Shown one piece after another: positions 2,355 through 24,183 of a DNA stretch of 64,000 nt. The position numbers were made by a program, and so were the translations under genes. This stretch comes from Bacillus subtilis subsp. subtilis str. 168. Its GTDB lineage: Bacteria; Bacillota; Bacilli; Bacillales; Bacillaceae. Position 1 is the first letter of the stretch, and each line of letters begins with the position of its first letter. The notes beneath the pieces were generated by a model. It made no database searches, was not told where the DNA came from, and saw only the letters and a list, made by a program, of their open reading frames with translations. The stretch is taken from NCBI RefSeq assembly GCF_000009045.1, contig NC_000964.3, positions 1,054,001-1,118,000 of the forward strand. The letters are read 5' to 3'.

Positions 2355-2383
2355 TTGTCATCGGAAAGGAAAACTGAGATAAT
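2355..2383 (+). promoter_or_regulatory. SigA promoter of the sRNA
   Basis: TTGTCA-N17-GATAAT with TG at the extended -10 position. Confidence 0.7.
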
Positions 2384-2388
2384 AACAT

Positions 2389-2402
2389 TGAAAGCGCCTA
2401 CA
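2389..2402 (+). promoter_or_regulatory. cre site (CcpA) over the transcription start
   Basis: TGAAAGCGCCTACA vs TGWAARCGYTWNCA. Confidence 0.7.
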
Positions 2403-2618
2403 CTTACCTATTTCAAATGGATACGGTCGCATATCATGCCGTTATATAGAGGGGATAAGCAACAGAGAGTAAGTGTTCGGAGCGCATCATTGGTCAAACA
2501 AGGGGTTCCTGATACATGATTTTTCGTAAATCGAAATAACGATATTAGGGAGAATGGCTGCTTCGATCGTATCCTATCAACAAGCCATACATAAAGTCTG
2601 CTGAGCCAGGCTTTTTTT
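2390..2618 (+). ncRNA. rosA: RosA RNA sponge for RoxS/FsrA (about 229 nt)
   Basis: Promoter + cre at 5' end; three G-rich tracts (AGAGGGG 2448, AGGGG 2501, AGGGAGA 2547); terminator AAGTCTG-CTGAGC-CAGGCTT-T5 at 3' end; no plus-strand ORF; length and features fit what I recall of RosA (S345). Confidence 0.75.
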
Positions 2619-2635
2619 GCTTTAAGAAAAGGTTG

Positions 2636-2701: not shown

Positions 2702-3568
2702 GTGTCAAAACAATTGCTTGCCTTAAATATAGATGGAGCGCTGCTTCGGTCGAACGGGAAGATTCATCAGGCAACGAAAGACGCGATTGAATATGTAAAG
2801 AAAAAAGGGATTTACGTCACACTTGTGACCAACCGTCATTTTCGCTCAGCACAGAAAATAGCGAAATCGCTAAAGCTTGATGCCAAGCTGATCACCCATA
2901 GCGGGGCATATATCGCTGAGAAAATTGACGCCCCGTTTTTTGAAAAAAGAATTTCTGATGATCATACCTTTAACATTGTTCAAGTGCTGGAGAGCTATCA
3001 ATGCAATATTCGGCTTCTTCACGAAAAGTATTCCATCGGAAACAAGAAAAAGGTGAATTCGAATTTATTAGGGAAAGCACTCATTCATCCGTCTGACCCG
3101 ATCTTTTATCCAGTCCAGTTCGTTGAATCATTAAGCGATCTCCTCATGGATGAGCCGGTGAGTGCACCCGTCATCGAGGTGTACACGGAGCACGACATTC
3201 AGCATGACATTACAGAAACGATTACAAAAGCCTTCCCTGCGGTGGACGTGATTCGCGTAAACGATGAGAAACTGAATATCGTCCCGAAGGGTGTCTCGAA
3301 GGAAGCGGGTTTGGCCCTCGTCGCTTCAGAGCTGGGCCTGAGTATGGATGATGTCGTGGCCATTGGGCATCAGTATGACGATCTGCCGATGATCGAACTT
3401 GCCGGTCTTGGGGTAGCGATGGGGAATGCCGTTCCGGAAATTAAGAGAAAGGCAGATTGGGTTACAAGGTCCAATGACGAGCAAGGTGTCGCTTATATGA
3501 TGAAGGAATATTTCCGAATGCAGCAGCGAAAAGGATTTCTTGATAAGTTCCACATGAAACGTGTGTAA
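2702..3568 (+). CDS. yhaX: Cof-type HAD-fold protein (spore coat associated; catalytic motifs degenerate)
   Basis: AAGGAGGGGG RBS + GTG; HAD fold motifs recognisable (NIDGALL, KGVSK, GHQYDD, GVAMGNA). Confidence 0.85.
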   Translation: MSKQLLALNIDGALLRSNGKIHQATKDAIEYVKKKGIYVTLVTNRHFRSAQKIAKSLKLDAKLITHSGAYIAEKIDAPFFEKRISDDHTFNIVQVLESYQCNIRLLHEKYSIGNKKKVNSNLLGKALIHPSDPIFYPVQFVESLSDLLMDEPVSAPVIEVYTEHDIQHDITETITKAFPAVDVIRVNDEKLNIVPKGVSKEAGLALVASELGLSMDDVVAIGHQYDDLPMIELAGLGVAMGNAVPEIKRKADWVTRSNDEQGVAYMMKEYFRMQQRKGFLDKFHMKRV

Positions 3569-8464: not shown

Positions 8465-8590
8465 CAGGTTTCTCCTCCATTTTAAGGTTTATCAGTCTTT
8501 CTTCATTTATATTCTAAAAAGGAAATCAAAATCCTTTATTATGCTTTATCCAAAATTAGTATATAATGGGTCAGGGAAGGAGGAGATTCA

Positions 8591-12076: not shown

Positions 12077-14968
12077 GTGACAGCTTTGCGAATTATATCT
12101 TTACATATCTACCAATACGGAAAATTTTCCAATCGGACCTTTGACTTTTCCGCCTCTCCTGTCCAAGTCATCTACGGATTAAATGAGGCAGGAAAAACGA
12201 CGATGATGTCATTCATTGAAAGCATGCTGTTCGGTTTTCCGAAAACGAAAAAGTATGAACCGAAAACAGGCGGTGTCTACGGCGGTGTTCTTGAAGCTGA
12301 ACATCCTGAGTATGGGGTGCTGAAGATCGAACGGACGAAAGGGACTGCCGAAAAACTAAGCGTGTACACAGAAAAGGGCGAAGTAAAGCAGGGAGATGTT
12401 TTAAAGCAGCTGTTCCAGGGCACAGACAGGTCGTTGTACAAAGCCATATATTCGTTCGACGTATTCGGGCTGCAGGAAATTCACGCCTTTAATCGGGACA
12501 AGATAGGGGAATTTTTGCTCTTTTCCAGCTTGTTTGGTGCTGAAGCCGTATCAAAGCTTGATTCAAGGCTGACGAAGGAAAGCGAAAGGCTCTATAAACC
12601 AAATGGGCGAAACCCTCAATTGAATCAGGAGCTGGAAACGCTTAAGCAGCTGGCAGTTAAGCTAAAACAGGCTGAAGCAGAGGAAGCGGGCTATCATCAG
12701 CTTCTCGAGGAAAAACGAACGCTTGAAGCCCGCCTTGCAGCCGCGGAAACCGAATTGAAAGAGACGGCGGGACATATCCGAATGATTGAGGGAGCGATTG
12801 AGCGAAAGCCGCTGCTAAATGAAAAAGCGACACTCGAACAGGTGATTGCAGAATTTCCGGAACACGCAGGACAATTTCCTGCTGACGGACTGCATCAGCT
12901 GGAAAAATATGAATCCCATCTTCACCCGAAATCAGCACAGCTTGAGGCGCTTCGGGTGAAGATGGCGGAGTTGGACAAACAGAGGCAAAAGCTTATCCCC
13001 GATAAAGAACTATTGGCGAAAGAAACGCTGATACAAGAGCTTTCGGCAGCGTTTCATATGTACCAATCCTGGGGAGAACAGCTGGCAGCCATTCAGGCAC
13101 AGCTGCGCCAGACGTCTGCGCAGACAGCGGCAGGGCTGGAACAGCTCAATAAAACGGATGAAAATGAGCTCCTGAATATGAACACCTCATATGATTATGA
13201 ATGGCAGCTTCAGCAAGCGGTGCAGCAATATGTACAGGCAAGAGACAGAAAACGGCAGCTTGACGAGACGTTTGAACTTGCCCGGCAAGAGCTGGAAGAC
13301 GCGGAAAAGGCCGTTCGTGCCGCTTCGTCCGCGATTCTTGAAAACAGCCAAAGAAAAGATAAAGAAGCAGCTCTTAGAGCATATGATGAAACACAGGGGC
13401 AGCACCAAGAGCAAGCGAAGCTCAGAGAACAGCTAACGTTTTTTGAAAGACAGCAGGCTAAACAGAAAAAGACTGTCATTGCAGCTGGTATGTTGTTCAT
13501 CGTTCTCTTTTCTCTGCTGCAGCAATGGATTCCCGCCATAAGTTTCGGCGCTGCACTTATTGTGTATTGGCTTGTTTCAGGAAAGTCGTCTTCTCGAAAC
13601 AGCCGAGAGACAAGACAGCCCATGACGGATATTTCACCAGCAGAAGCTGAAATGCTTAGAGAAGCGTTATGGGAGGATGACCGCAATAAGCAGCACCTTC
13701 TCACACAGCGTGCAGCGCTCCAGCAAAAAGAGGCGGCGTATGAAAGGGTCATCCAGCAGTTTGAACAGTGGGAAGCCGAAATGGCGCCGTCCTTTACACA
13801 GGTTGAGCGTTTTATGAATGAGCTCGGATTTAAGGAAGATCCATCATTTTTGCTTGATGCATACAGCTTAATGAAGGATGTTAAAAAAGAAGTGAAGAAA
13901 AAGCATGAGCTGACCATAGAAGCAGGCAGGCTGAAAAAGCACCGGAGAACATTCGAAGAACGCGTCAGTATGCTTCTTCCCGTGAATCAGAGTCAGGATA
14001 TCTCCATTTCGGACGCCCTTCACACATTGCGGAAAAACATTGAACGTGAAAAAGAAATTGAGAAGCAAAAAAAGGAAATTGAAACAGATATTCATTATAC
14101 AAAGGAACAGATGCTTGAACTTGAGCAAGAAATACAGTATTTCCACGCACAGATTGAACAGTTATTTGCCGCGGCTGCTGCAAAAGACAGAGATGCGTTT
14201 TTTGCCATAGCCGCCATCAGCAGGCAATTGAAGGATACGGAGAACAAGCTTCATCACGTAAACGCACAGCTTCAAGGCGGGTACCCGGAGGAACTTGAAC
14301 TGGCGGATTCCAATACGCTTTCTGAATTGAAAGATAAGCAATTTGTTGAGAATGAAAGAAAAGAGCGGCTGACTGAGGAGATCGAGCAGCTCCGCAGCCA
14401 AATCGCACTGCTCTCAGTCAAACAGGAACAATTAGAGGCTTCGGGAATGGTCTCAGACCTCAAGCTTCAAACCGAAATGCAAAAAGAACGTGTGAAAGAA
14501 ACGGCTAAAAAATGGGCCTCCATACAAATGGTCAAACAGGTGATCAGAAACAAATTGGAGCGGCATAAAAAAATCGAGCTTCCGCGCCTTCTGGAGACGG
14601 CAGGAGAATTTTTCCGTCCTCTGACTGACGGAAACTACCAAACCATTTATTTTTCCGAAACGGATGATTCGATCATGGTTATGCATCGCGATGGCACTGT
14701 CTATCATGCGGAAGAGCTGTCACAAGGGACGTGTGAACAGCTGTATACAGCGATCCGCTTTGCTTTGGCCGTTACGCGCCAGGGTGAGTCAAAGCTTCCG
14801 TTCCAGCTTGACGACAGTTTTGTTCATTTTGATCAGGAAAGGCTGAAACGTGTATTACATGTTCTGTATGATTTATCTGAAGGCGGTAGGCAGATTTTGT
14901 ATTTTACATGCCATGAGCACGTAAAAGATGCATTTCATAGCAGCCAAATCATCCATTTGGTGTCATAA
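12077..14968 (+). CDS. sbcE: SMC/Rad50-like ABC ATPase with long coiled coil
   Basis: GLNEAGKTT Walker A; LSQGT signature; LDDSFVHFD Walker B/D-loop; FTCH; start GTG 12077 or TTG 12086. Confidence 0.88.
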
Positions 14969-22514: not shown

Positions 22515-22952
22515 TTATGATGAGGCCAGGCGTTTTGCGATAGAGGAAGAGATGTTCTGCAGATCCTCCGGTTTATAATCATCAGCATGCGTTTTCCAAA
22601 CCGCTCCGAATCCATCTCCTTTTCCGTAGCGAGGGATAATATGCATATGGTAGTGGAACACAGATTGTCCAGCTTTTTCGCCGTTATTGTTCAGCGTATT
22701 TAAGCCGATCGGTTCAAATTCATCCCGGATAGCGCGGGCGATTTTTGGAACAGCATGGAAATATTGTTTTGCTAATTCATCTGTAAATTCATATACATTC
22801 TCAATATGTGTTTTCGGAATGACAAGCGTATGGCCTTTTGTCACTTGGCTGATATCAAGAAAGGCAAGTACATGTTCATCTTCATACACCTTCGCTGATG
22901 GAATGTCGCCGGCAATAATTTTACAAAAGATACAATTCTCTGCACAATGCAT
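22515..22952 (-). CDS. hit: HIT-family nucleotide hydrolase
   Basis: CIFCKII and HYHMH histidine triad. Confidence 0.93.
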   Translation of the reverse strand: MHCAENCIFCKIIAGDIPSAKVYEDEHVLAFLDISQVTKGHTLVIPKTHIENVYEFTDELAKQYFHAVPKIARAIRDEFEPIGLNTLNNNGEKAGQSVFHYHMHIIPRYGKGDGFGAVWKTHADDYKPEDLQNISSSIAKRLASS

Positions 22953-23012
22953 GAGGGTTCCTCCTTATGAAATTGTTTAGTATGTATACATTCATCGTAC
23001 CACAGAAATGCA

Positions 23013-23051
23013 GAAAATAGAAAACAGGATGAACGGCGAGCGTTCACCCTG
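23013..23051 (-). terminator. Minus-strand intrinsic terminator upstream of hit with no annotated gene feeding it
   Basis: CAGGGUGAACG-CUCGC-CGUUCAUCCUG-UUUUCUAUUUU; 11-bp stem with one G.U pair (A.C mismatch if read on plus). Confidence 0.7.
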
Positions 23052-23313
23052 AATGCAGAGGAAGAGCTTATATGAAGAAAATGTGTTATGCCTTTGGTAA
23101 GCACCTCATTTGTCAATAAAATGAAGACTTGTTTAATGCCTAACGATTCCTGCGATAAACACCTCATTTGACAATTTGCTTCATACATGAAGAATTCATC
23201 AATTCAGTGAAGAGAAATGGTTTGAGCATTGGACATGTTTATTTTCTATCCAACTGTTTCTAAGACGTCTTTGACAAACACCTCATTTTTCAGTTGATAT
23301 GCTTTTCCTCTAC
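23018..23313 (-). ncRNA. Putative sRNA (about 300 nt) with three SD-like repeats
   Basis: Inferred from the terminator, a candidate SigG/SigF-like promoter (TCATA-N18-CATCATA, 23349-23320) and triple repeats; ends approximate. Confidence 0.45.
23092..23294. repeat. Three imperfect 26-nt direct repeats (23092-23117, 23150-23175, 23269-23294)
   Basis: ctttggtaagCACCTCATTTgtcaat / ctgcgataaaCACCTCATTTgacaat / ctttgacaaaCACCTCATTTttcagt; 18 of 26 positions invariant. Confidence 0.85.
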
Positions 23314-23381
23314 AACTTTTATGATGTCCAGAACCCTGTCTCTTTATGACAGCAAATTCATCATTTGTTAAAAGGGAATTG

Positions 23382-23411
23382 TTTCAAATCAGGCCTTGTT
23401 TTTGGTACTAT
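23382..23411 (+). promoter_or_regulatory. SigA-type promoter of ecsABC
   Basis: TTTCAA-N18-TACTAT with extended TG. Confidence 0.55.
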
Positions 23412-23439
23412 GAAGAAAAACACTATAAGGGGAGAAACT

Positions 23440-24183
23440 ATGTCTCTGCTATCGGTAAAAGACTTGACCGGCGGATATACAAGGAATCCGGTTTTAAAAA
23501 ACGTATCATTCACCCTTGAACCGAATCAAATTGTCGGCTTAATCGGGCTGAATGGTGCTGGTAAAAGTACAACAATCAGACACATCATCGGGCTGATGGA
23601 CCCGCATAAAGGTTCAATCGAATTAAACGGTAAAACGTTTGCTGAGGATCCGGAAGGCTACCGTTCACAATTTACCTATATACCTGAAACACCTGTTTTA
23701 TACGAAGAATTGACGCTGATGGAGCATCTTGAACTAACAGCCATGGCATATGGACTGTCAAAAGAAACGATGGAGAAAAGGCTGCCTCCGCTACTAAAGG
23801 AATTCCGAATGGAAAAGAGGCTGAAGTGGTTCCCGGCCCATTTTTCTAAAGGAATGAAGCAGAAGGTTATGATTATGTGCGCATTTTTGGCAGAGCCTGC
23901 GCTCTACATTATTGATGAGCCTTTTCTAGGGCTTGATCCGCTTGCCATTAACGCGCTGCTTGAACGGATGAATGAAGCGAAAAAAGGCGGGGCGAGCGTG
24001 CTGATGTCAACACACATTTTGGCAACGGCAGAACGCTATTGCGATTCGTTTATTATTTTACATAACGGCGAGGTGCGGGCGCGCGGCACGCTGTCAGAGC
24101 TCAGAGAGCAGTTTGGAATGAAGGACGCGGCGCTGGACGATTTGTATCTTGAGCTTACAAAGGAAGACGCTGGCCATGAATAA
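23440..24183 (+). CDS. ecsA: ABC transporter ATP-binding protein EcsA
   Basis: GLNGAGKST, FSKGM, IIDEPFLGLD. Confidence 0.95.
   Translation: MSLLSVKDLTGGYTRNPVLKNVSFTLEPNQIVGLIGLNGAGKSTTIRHIIGLMDPHKGSIELNGKTFAEDPEGYRSQFTYIPETPVLYEELTLMEHLELTAMAYGLSKETMEKRLPPLLKEFRMEKRLKWFPAHFSKGMKQKVMIMCAFLAEPALYIIDEPFLGLDPLAINALLERMNEAKKGGASVLMSTHILATAERYCDSFIILHNGEVRARGTLSELREQFGMKDAALDDLYLELTKEDAGHE

Follow-up and report, generated by a model that had tools for sequence, protein, structure and literature searches.

The hit-ecsA spacer of Bacillus subtilis carries the known small RNA S357/ncr1670, whose repeated Shine-Dalgarno-like motifs recur across Bacillaceae

The best characterised relative of the RNA considered here is Bvs196 of Bacillus velezensis PEBA20, a small RNA (sRNA) of 294 nucleotides (nt) encoded in the 490-bp hinT-ecsA spacer and described as the homolog of B. 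subtilis S357 (Xu et al., 2022, PMC9147052). It forms a band of ~300 nt in Northern blots, and its promoter fused to the green fluorescent protein gene is active in the forespore only, this activity being sigmaF-dependent and mainly due to sigmaG, with a more than 12-fold fall in a sigG mutant. Deletion of Bvs196 leads to lower heat and ultraviolet resistance of the spores, and the RNA binds fragments of the sspN-tlp and spo0A mRNAs in vitro (PMC9147052). The corresponding locus of B. subtilis subsp. subtilis str. 168 was analysed here within a 64,000-nt stretch of its chromosome (NC_000964.3, positions 1,054,001 to 1,118,000; hereafter the window, to which coordinates refer unless stated otherwise). 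In this stretch, an earlier note made from the sequence had proposed a new, possibly sporulation-specific, non-coding RNA on the minus strand of the gap between hit and ecsA. This unit is the gene for S357/ncr1670, the ortholog of Bvs196. The RNA is not new, as it was catalogued in 2010-2012 and its ortholog characterised in 2022. The new point is its modular anatomy, built on a repeated motif that is not described in the papers cited here or in Rfam.

Other described systems also offer points of comparison. The STAB-SD elements of Bacillus mRNAs are Shine-Dalgarno (SD)-like stabilisers, which bind the 30S ribosomal subunit without initiating translation. The S357 motif is likewise complementary to the 3' end of 16S rRNA, with no start codon at initiating distance and no open reading frame (ORF) after it. 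However, a STAB-SD is a single 5'-proximal element of an mRNA leader, whereas the S357 motifs are several along a non-coding RNA and carry extra invariant flanks (AAAU...UYUR..AAAG). The sponge RNAs CsrB and RsmZ are non-coding, like the S357 family, and contain variable numbers of copies of one short conserved motif (2-7 in the S357 family). They differ in that the CsrA site is a GGA in hairpin loops, whereas the S357 core AUGAGGUG has no consensus hairpin and no known binding protein. Besides, CsfG is a forespore sRNA controlled by sigmaF/sigmaG like S357 and listed alongside the Bvs196 homolog as an independent sporulation sRNA, but it belongs to another locus and has another sequence.

Several surveys have met S357 in B. 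subtilis. A minus-strand complementary DNA peak between hinT and ecsA, at genome positions 1077246-1077313 and with the gene-direction code /-/-/+/, was listed as ncr1670 (Irnov et al., 2010, PMC2965217). The same name was later given to a 256-nt RNA at 1077037-1077292, enriched 2.77-fold by co-immunoprecipitation with Hfq (Dambach et al., 2013, PMC3574147). ncr1670 was then equated with the tiling-array segment S357 of Nicolas et al. (2012), and an effect of hfq inactivation in minimal medium on this RNA was reported (Rochat et al., 2015, PMC4410918). S357 was further classed as independently transcribed, with sporulation sigma factors predicted (PMC9147052), and its promoter is active in sporulation according to a thesis known through its citation in a 2024 review. 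Genome and window coordinates were related by an offset of 1,054,000, which fits both published ends of ncr560, another sRNA of the window. With this offset, the published 5' boundary of ncr1670 (1077313) falls at 23313, i.e., 7 nt past the -10 box, and the published RNA-seq coverage falls at 23037-23292. The earlier note had made its unit depend on a minus-strand RNA ending near 23018, and the coverage does run to 23037, inside the terminator hairpin, so that the refuting condition set there does not hold. The unit was therefore identified with ncr1670, since gap, strand and coordinates match after calibration of the offset on ncr560; locus, strand and ends are the same and no difference was seen. 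Over 473-499 nt, the spacer shares 76-79% identity with those of B. siamensis and Bacillus sp. ISL-51, from the B. amyloliquefaciens group. Homology to the B. velezensis group was judged on these two spacers, the S357 homology of Bvs196 being taken as stated by its authors (PMC9147052). For the B. subtilis copy, the literature consulted on S357/ncr1670 reports neither a function nor an analysis of structure or motifs.

The 487-nt gap (22953-23439) holds three direct repeats of ~30 nt (family D1), all inside the transcription unit and missed in the earlier note. On the RNA strand, they share the motif RAAAUGAGGUGUYUR..AAAG. Conservation was followed in an alignment of the spacers of 15 Bacillus species from the subtilis, amyloliquefaciens, pumilus and licheniformis groups. 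Unit 1 reads AUGAGGUGUUU identically in 14 of them, B. atrophaeus having ACG for AUG, and unit 2 (UCAAAUGAGGUGUUU) is unchanged in all 15. Unit 3 is looser, reading AUGGGGUG in the licheniformis group and being degenerate in the pumilus group. This alignment provides the unbiased view of conservation, the motif profile used below having been seeded on exact 8-mers, so that the invariance of the core among strong matches is partly built in. In the window, only the three gap copies were significant with the unit profile, one weak match being found at 13190 (E=7.8). Sites complementary to the motif were limited in the window to the antisense of the units and one site at 13182. A text search of the literature for the motif returned only unrelated primer and microRNA strings. 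In Rfam 15, nothing relevant matched the window at E <= 10 or, at the gathering score, seven related loci from other genera; weak snoRNA-like matches were attributed to chance. The RNA family is thus absent from Rfam.

The earlier note had read TCATA-N18-CATCATA upstream of the unit as a forespore-type promoter, while calling the match weak. Both statements stand. On its own the match is indeed weak, 6 sites of the window fitting the loose sigmaG pattern gHATR-N17/18-CATnHTA where 3.9 +/- 2.1 are expected. When GG is added to the pattern, this site is the sole match in the window, against 0.19 expected. The aligned -35 (G/T-C/A-ATA) and -10 elements are kept in position and sequence not only in the 15 Bacillus species but also in many other genera, the GGnCATnnTA box upstream of the RNA being kept in more than ten genera. 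It is because of this conservation, and because the published 5' end lies 7 nt downstream, that the promoter is convincing. S357 and Bvs196 thus share a conserved sequence match to a sigmaF/sigmaG-type promoter, in-vivo dependence having been shown for Bvs196 only. As for the sporulation-specific expression considered in the earlier note, it holds for Bvs196, which is expressed in the forespore under sigmaF and mainly sigmaG; for the B. subtilis copy it is a matter of sequence match, prediction and the cited thesis. On the other side, the sRNA promoter stands back-to-back with the probable promoter of ecsA, the reverse complement of which (ATAGTACCA...ATTTGAAA) is kept in relatives. None of the six loose sigmaG-pattern matches lies on the plus strand of the window, and several of them are located within genes. 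A sporulation-type promoter-like sequence, TTATA-N18-CATAATA, was also seen at 8566 on the minus strand, ~100 nt upstream of a 61-amino-acid (aa) ORF with a strong ribosome-binding site (RBS; MADYFLTVFDPSGNTLVNEQF...).

At the 3' end, the hairpin and U-tract described in the earlier note were found where it had placed them. The 5' arm CAGGGTGAACG (23051-23041) and the 3' arm CGTTCATCCTG (23035-23025) enclose the loop CTCGC (23040-23036) and are followed by the tail TTTTCTATTTT (23024-23014). The stem has 11 pairs, one of them a G.U that turns into an A.C mismatch when the plus strand is read. The hairpin folds with -16.1 kcal/mol on the minus strand; the plus strand reaches -13.9 kcal/mol, with an interrupted stem and without U-tract. 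Terminator-like sites numbered 5 in 2.5 kb against 2.5 +/- 1.6 expected, and the stem shows compensatory changes across species. The minus-strand RNA starts at 23313 and stops at this terminator, giving ~296-300 nt without conserved ORF. Its minimum free energy (MFE) is -82.5 kcal/mol (z = -4.2) as a single sequence, compared with -82.3 kcal/mol for the consensus of Bvs196 (PMC9147052). The two RNAs have in common a length of ~300 nt, a sigmaF/sigmaG promoter, a Rho-independent terminator and a stable conserved fold, and orthologs within Bacillus are 292-341 nt long. The earlier note was also right that no RBS-led ORF lies between promoter and hairpin. Indeed, in the ORF list, the ORFs of the 487-nt gap are purely mechanical and none is SD-led. 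Moreover, the indels among orthologs are not multiples of three and the ORFs starting at the motif AUG are inconsistent. The only long ORF of the gap, a mechanical one of 115 aa (22841-23188, minus strand), starts in the sRNA, continues past the terminator and reaches into the 5' part of hit, though in another frame; it was rejected as a gene, having no RBS and no conservation.

The two ends of the RNA are joined by a closing helix. In the 15 Bacillus species, a 5' box (GUAGAGGAA / GUAGAAGAA / GAAGAAGG) pairs with a 3' box (UUCCUCUGC / UUCUUCUGC / CCUUCUUCA). Compensatory changes were detected in this helix with RNAalifold, and its G.U pairs are mismatches on the other strand. For 54 distinct RNAs, the 5'/3' duplex had a mean energy of -21.4 kcal/mol, against -12.4 kcal/mol for shuffled sequences and -10.3 kcal/mol for internal controls (p ~1e-10). 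The helix covaries, since the sequence of the 5' box changes between genera (GAGGAA, GAAGAAGG, GAAGGGGA and others). A conserved hairpin was also sought for the repeat unit itself but found no support. Base-pair probabilities over 197 units showed no dominant partner, and two fixed-register stem models were only 37-91% and 26-86% canonical, with little covariation. Duplexes between core and flank were no exception (-5.4 vs -5.2 kcal/mol for shuffled sequences, p=0.06). An all-pairs covariation scan was weak (best pair -4:+29, excess 0.20), RNAalifold on 81 units returned 0 pairs (a shift of 11 nt in the register of the three window units leaving this outcome unchanged), and local MFE z-scores averaged -0.2 to -0.8. 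Because no common local fold is supported, the unit is described here as a primary-sequence motif. The coordinates of all these elements are collected in Table 1.

Table 1. Positions in the window of the S357/ncr1670 elements, of the neighbouring genes and of ncr560.
Feature	Position	Strand	Remarks
S357/ncr1670 RNA	23313-23014	-	~296-300 nt; 3' end somewhere in the U-tract
Repeat unit 1	23265-23294	-	core AUGAGGUG 23286-23279; nhmmer score 24.3
Repeat unit 2	23146-23175	-	core AUGAGGUG 23167-23160
Repeat unit 3	23088-23117	-	core AUGAGGUG 23109-23102
-35 element TCATA	23349-23345	-	sigmaG/sigmaF type; read from sequence
-10 region GGACATCATA	23329-23320	-	CATCATA 23326-23320 with GGA before it; 18-nt spacer from -35
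Transcription start (G)	23313	-	7 nt after the -10 box; published 1077313 minus offset 1,054,000
Closing helix, 5' purine-rich arm (UGUAGAGGAAAAGCAUAU)	23297-23314	-	inverted repeat I1
Closing helix, 3' pyrimidine-rich arm (..GCUCUUCCUCUGCA)	23054-23071	-	directly before the terminator
Intrinsic terminator	23051-23014	-	11-bp stem 23051-23025 and U-tract 23024-23014
Putative hit promoter, TGgTACGAT	22994-23002	-	sigmaA extended -10; downstream of the terminator
Putative ecsA promoter, TTCAAA-17-TACTAT with TG	23383-23411	+	back-to-back with the sRNA promoter; read from sequence
hit/hinT, HIT-family protein	22515-22952	-	downstream neighbour of the RNA gene
ecsA, ABC transporter ATPase	23440-24183	+	divergent neighbour of the RNA gene
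ncr560/ncr18, known sRNA	2355-2622	+	between yhaZ-like and yhaX-like ORFs

The distribution of the motif was then considered in the 80 best loci encoding Hit relatives, a set that does not include the B. cereus group, Paenibacillus and Clostridia. An ecsA homolog lies divergently upstream of hit in 79 of the 80. The exact 8-mer ATGAGGTG occurs 2-7 times upstream of hit in most loci and nearly always on the hit strand. With the 30-nt unit profile, 236 sense-strand matches were obtained in the hit-ecsA spacers of 76 loci and only 7 weak matches elsewhere; the units of the family loci (L001-L079) are those upstream of position 3000. In 61 loci, a single sigmaG-like promoter (G/T-C/A-ATA, N17-18, GGnCATnnTA) precedes the first unit and a single strong terminator follows the last. 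These loci cover Bacillus, Priestia, Metabacillus, Sutcliffiella, Peribacillus, Neobacillus and Rossellomorea, as well as Mesobacillus-like bacteria, Robertmurraya, Parageobacillus/Geobacillus and Anoxybacillaceae. Each RNA contains 2-7 units within 292-663 nt and its length scales with their number, being ~320 nt with two units, ~380 nt with three, ~470 nt with four and ~650 nt with seven. The seven-unit RNAs (640-660 nt) are those of Metabacillus niabensis, M. bambusae, Bacillus sp. J37 and a metagenome-assembled genome of Bacillota (L031, L039, L040 and L079). They lie ~150-800 nt upstream of hit, each with one promoter and one terminator, and they go back to the tandem duplication of 244 nt comprising three units, the two copies being 85% identical. 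Orthologs of Bvs196 had been reported by BLASTn in 253 Bacillus genomes, the repeats not being mentioned (PMC9147052). The family as seen here includes more than ten further genera and versions with 4-7 units (420-660 nt), beyond the range of that work.

Some lineages depart from this architecture. No unit, or only very weak matches, were found in loci of Alteribacter, Anaerobacillus and Salipaludibacillus (L026, L047, L063 and L080) and of Peribacillus sp. SCS (L024 and L025). The spacer of L080 is only ~180 nt long; those of L024 and L025 measure ~590 nt and give matches of 7-9 bits. This suggests that the RNA was lost or has strongly diverged in these lineages. Elsewhere, in Rossellomorea, Neobacillus, Robertmurraya and related genera, the RNA contains two additional conserved blocks, a degenerate unit (AACGGGGTGGTTGTTAAAGACC or AAATGGGGTGTTCGCTAAAGGC) and the box AAGGGGATGGTCGTCTTGCA, 60-130 nt upstream of a canonical unit (L035, L036, L048, L049, L051, L056, L064, L071, L073-L075, L077 and L078). 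In Metabacillus indicus (L028), the stretch that separates the sRNA terminator from hit contains three copies of a hairpin followed by a T-run (GGGTTAATGTTKCTAAACCC TTTTT), located ~361, 309 and 153 nt before hit. They form a small repeated element of an unrelated kind.

The neighbourhood in B. subtilis is completed by serC (phosphoserine transaminase gene), further downstream of hit on the minus strand. Far from this locus, ncr560/ncr18, which served to calibrate the offset, has published ends at genome positions 1056390-1056619 on the plus strand, between yhaZ and yhaX, and a reported Hfq enrichment of 13.9-fold. In the window, a TG-extended sigmaA promoter at 2355-2383 (10/12 match) predicts a start near 2390. 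The plus-strand terminator occupies 2593-2622, with the stem at 2593-2614 and a U-tract from 2615 that takes in ~2619, where the published 3' end falls.

Could the unit be something other than an independent trans-acting RNA? It lies on the hit strand and only ~60-70 nt separate its terminator from the start codon of hit downstream, as would be expected of an attenuator in a long 5' leader of hit, the upstream sequence being then a cis-regulatory leader. The earlier note had itself considered that the hairpin might only attenuate a hit leader. This reading is very unlikely, because a conserved block (TGTGGTACGAT / TGTGATACGAT / TGTGGTAATAT in the 15-species alignment) with a putative extended -10 promoter separates the terminator from the hit RBS, and because the ortholog Bvs196 yields a discrete ~300-nt band. 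Besides, the upstream promoter is of the forespore type, S357 was classed as independently transcribed (PMC9147052), the RNA terminator of Metabacillus indicus lies ~465 nt from hit, and the consensus fold offers no alternative antiterminator pairing. Hence the RNA appears to be separate from hit, which would own a conserved promoter downstream of the terminator, and the independent ~300-nt non-coding RNA of the earlier note is upheld by the literature on ncr1670/S357, by the Bvs196 Northern blot and by the conserved promoter, terminator and hit promoter. The repeats might alternatively act as DNA sites for a regulator of the divergent ecsA/hit promoters, the transcript being incidental; they do lie in a divergent promoter region and their plus-strand copy contains TTGACA-like words. 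However, all 236 copies have one orientation, and in the 61 loci with predictable ends the units always fall between one promoter and one terminator. Their spacing is irregular (52-200 nt), longer RNAs have more of them, the flanking helices include G.U pairs possible on the sense strand only, and the ecsA promoter is outside the repeat region, so that this possibility is remote in the extreme. Hardly any credit can be given either to the units encoding tiny peptides from the motif AUG (MRCL...). This AUG is invariant and codon 4 is a Leu codon in 161 of 199 units, with TTA, TTG, CTG and CTA all in use, but an SD-like word occurs within 20 nt upstream in only 5 of the 199 units. Moreover, the ORFs range from 2 to 200 aa, with a stop at codon 3 or 4 in 13 units, conservation ends at about nt 20 of the unit, and the Y-U-R pattern is equally explained by constraints on the RNA.

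The remaining alternative comes from the published work on Bvs196. S357 would be a classical antisense sRNA that acts solely through its variable region (nt ~74-131) on sspN-tlp and spo0A, with the motifs as a structural or stabilising scaffold. In microscale thermophoresis, dissociation constants of ~74 nM for sspN-tlp and 3.6 uM for spo0A were measured, binding was lost on mutation, and the sspN-tlp mRNA rose 2.9-fold in the deletion strain (PMC9147052). Nevertheless, the pairing evidence was obtained in vitro, compensatory mutants regained binding only at levels 10-100-fold below wild type, and Spo0A, as its authors point out, is active in the mother cell (PMC9147052). The pairing region is also the least conserved part of the RNA, whereas the motifs are invariant across genera. 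Indeed, the segments proposed to pair with the targets, nt 74-131 and 109-124, are flanked by unit 1 (~nt 28-35) and unit 2 (~nt 147-154), and the published pairing therefore does not explain the conservation of the motifs. Antisense pairing is rather unlikely, both as the exclusive mode of action and as a non-exclusive alternative to motif binding, although less so than the readings discarded above.

The best overall explanation is that the unit is S357/ncr1670 and that it is transcribed independently (probability of roughly 0.85). How the motifs would act is a more tentative matter. According to our proposal, S357 would act in trans through a functional core of repeated, near-invariant SD-like motifs held by the covarying 5'/3' closing helix. 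These motifs may bind multivalently to a very conserved pyrimidine-rich partner or protein, candidates being the anti-SD end of 16S rRNA in the 30S subunit, a CU-rich RNA and an RNA-binding protein. By binding this partner, S357 would adjust translation or the stability of RNA in forespore and spore, and antisense pairing to sspN-tlp and spo0A via the variable region may run alongside. Multivalent binding to such a partner is the most likely mechanism, albeit at somewhat less than even odds. Similarly, it is possible, at slightly under an even chance, that S357/Bvs196 is a member of a Bacillaceae-wide forespore RNA family working as a multivalent decoy or scaffold that titrates the 30S subunit, a CU-rich RNA or an RNA-binding protein, and not a conventional antisense sRNA. 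The motif core GAGGUG is a good SD sequence without a start codon at initiating distance, the unit consensus from +11 to +20 (RUYAAAGACA) being free of ATG, GTG and TTG. The predicted duplex of the motif with the 16S 3' end has an energy of -9.5 kcal/mol, which falls between those of the true RBSs of hit (-11.1 kcal/mol) and ecsA (-8.6 kcal/mol).

Several points weigh against this interpretation. The partner of the motif is purely conjectural. If anti-SD pairing were the sole constraint, GGAGG-type variants would be expected, and the invariant U of AAAUGAGG, a mismatch to the 16S tail, would not; nor does such pairing by itself account for the invariant flanks of the motif. No common local fold could be demonstrated for the units, and in full-length folds the motif is predicted to be mostly paired, with an unpaired probability of ~0.2. 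The published evidence on function comes from B. velezensis and not from B. subtilis, and both the thermophoresis affinities and the changes in quantitative reverse-transcription PCR are modest (PMC9147052). Finally, the 2.77-fold Hfq enrichment of ncr1670 is weak (PMC3574147), and the sigma-factor dependence of B. subtilis S357 comes from prediction and from the thesis as cited in the 2024 review.

As first posed, the finding adds nothing to the catalogue of sRNAs. Its interest may lie in the fact that the best-conserved parts of S357 are repeated motifs resembling ribosome-binding sites, which the published mechanism of Bvs196 leaves aside. The architecture made of a sigmaG promoter, a closing helix, 2-7 motifs and a terminator is kept in many spore-forming genera. 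Should ribosomes or a conserved RNA-binding protein be the partner of the motifs, the RNA would give a handle on how translation or RNA stability is managed in the forespore and dormant spore, a poorly understood question. It would then also rank among the rare sponge-type RNA candidates of Firmicutes.

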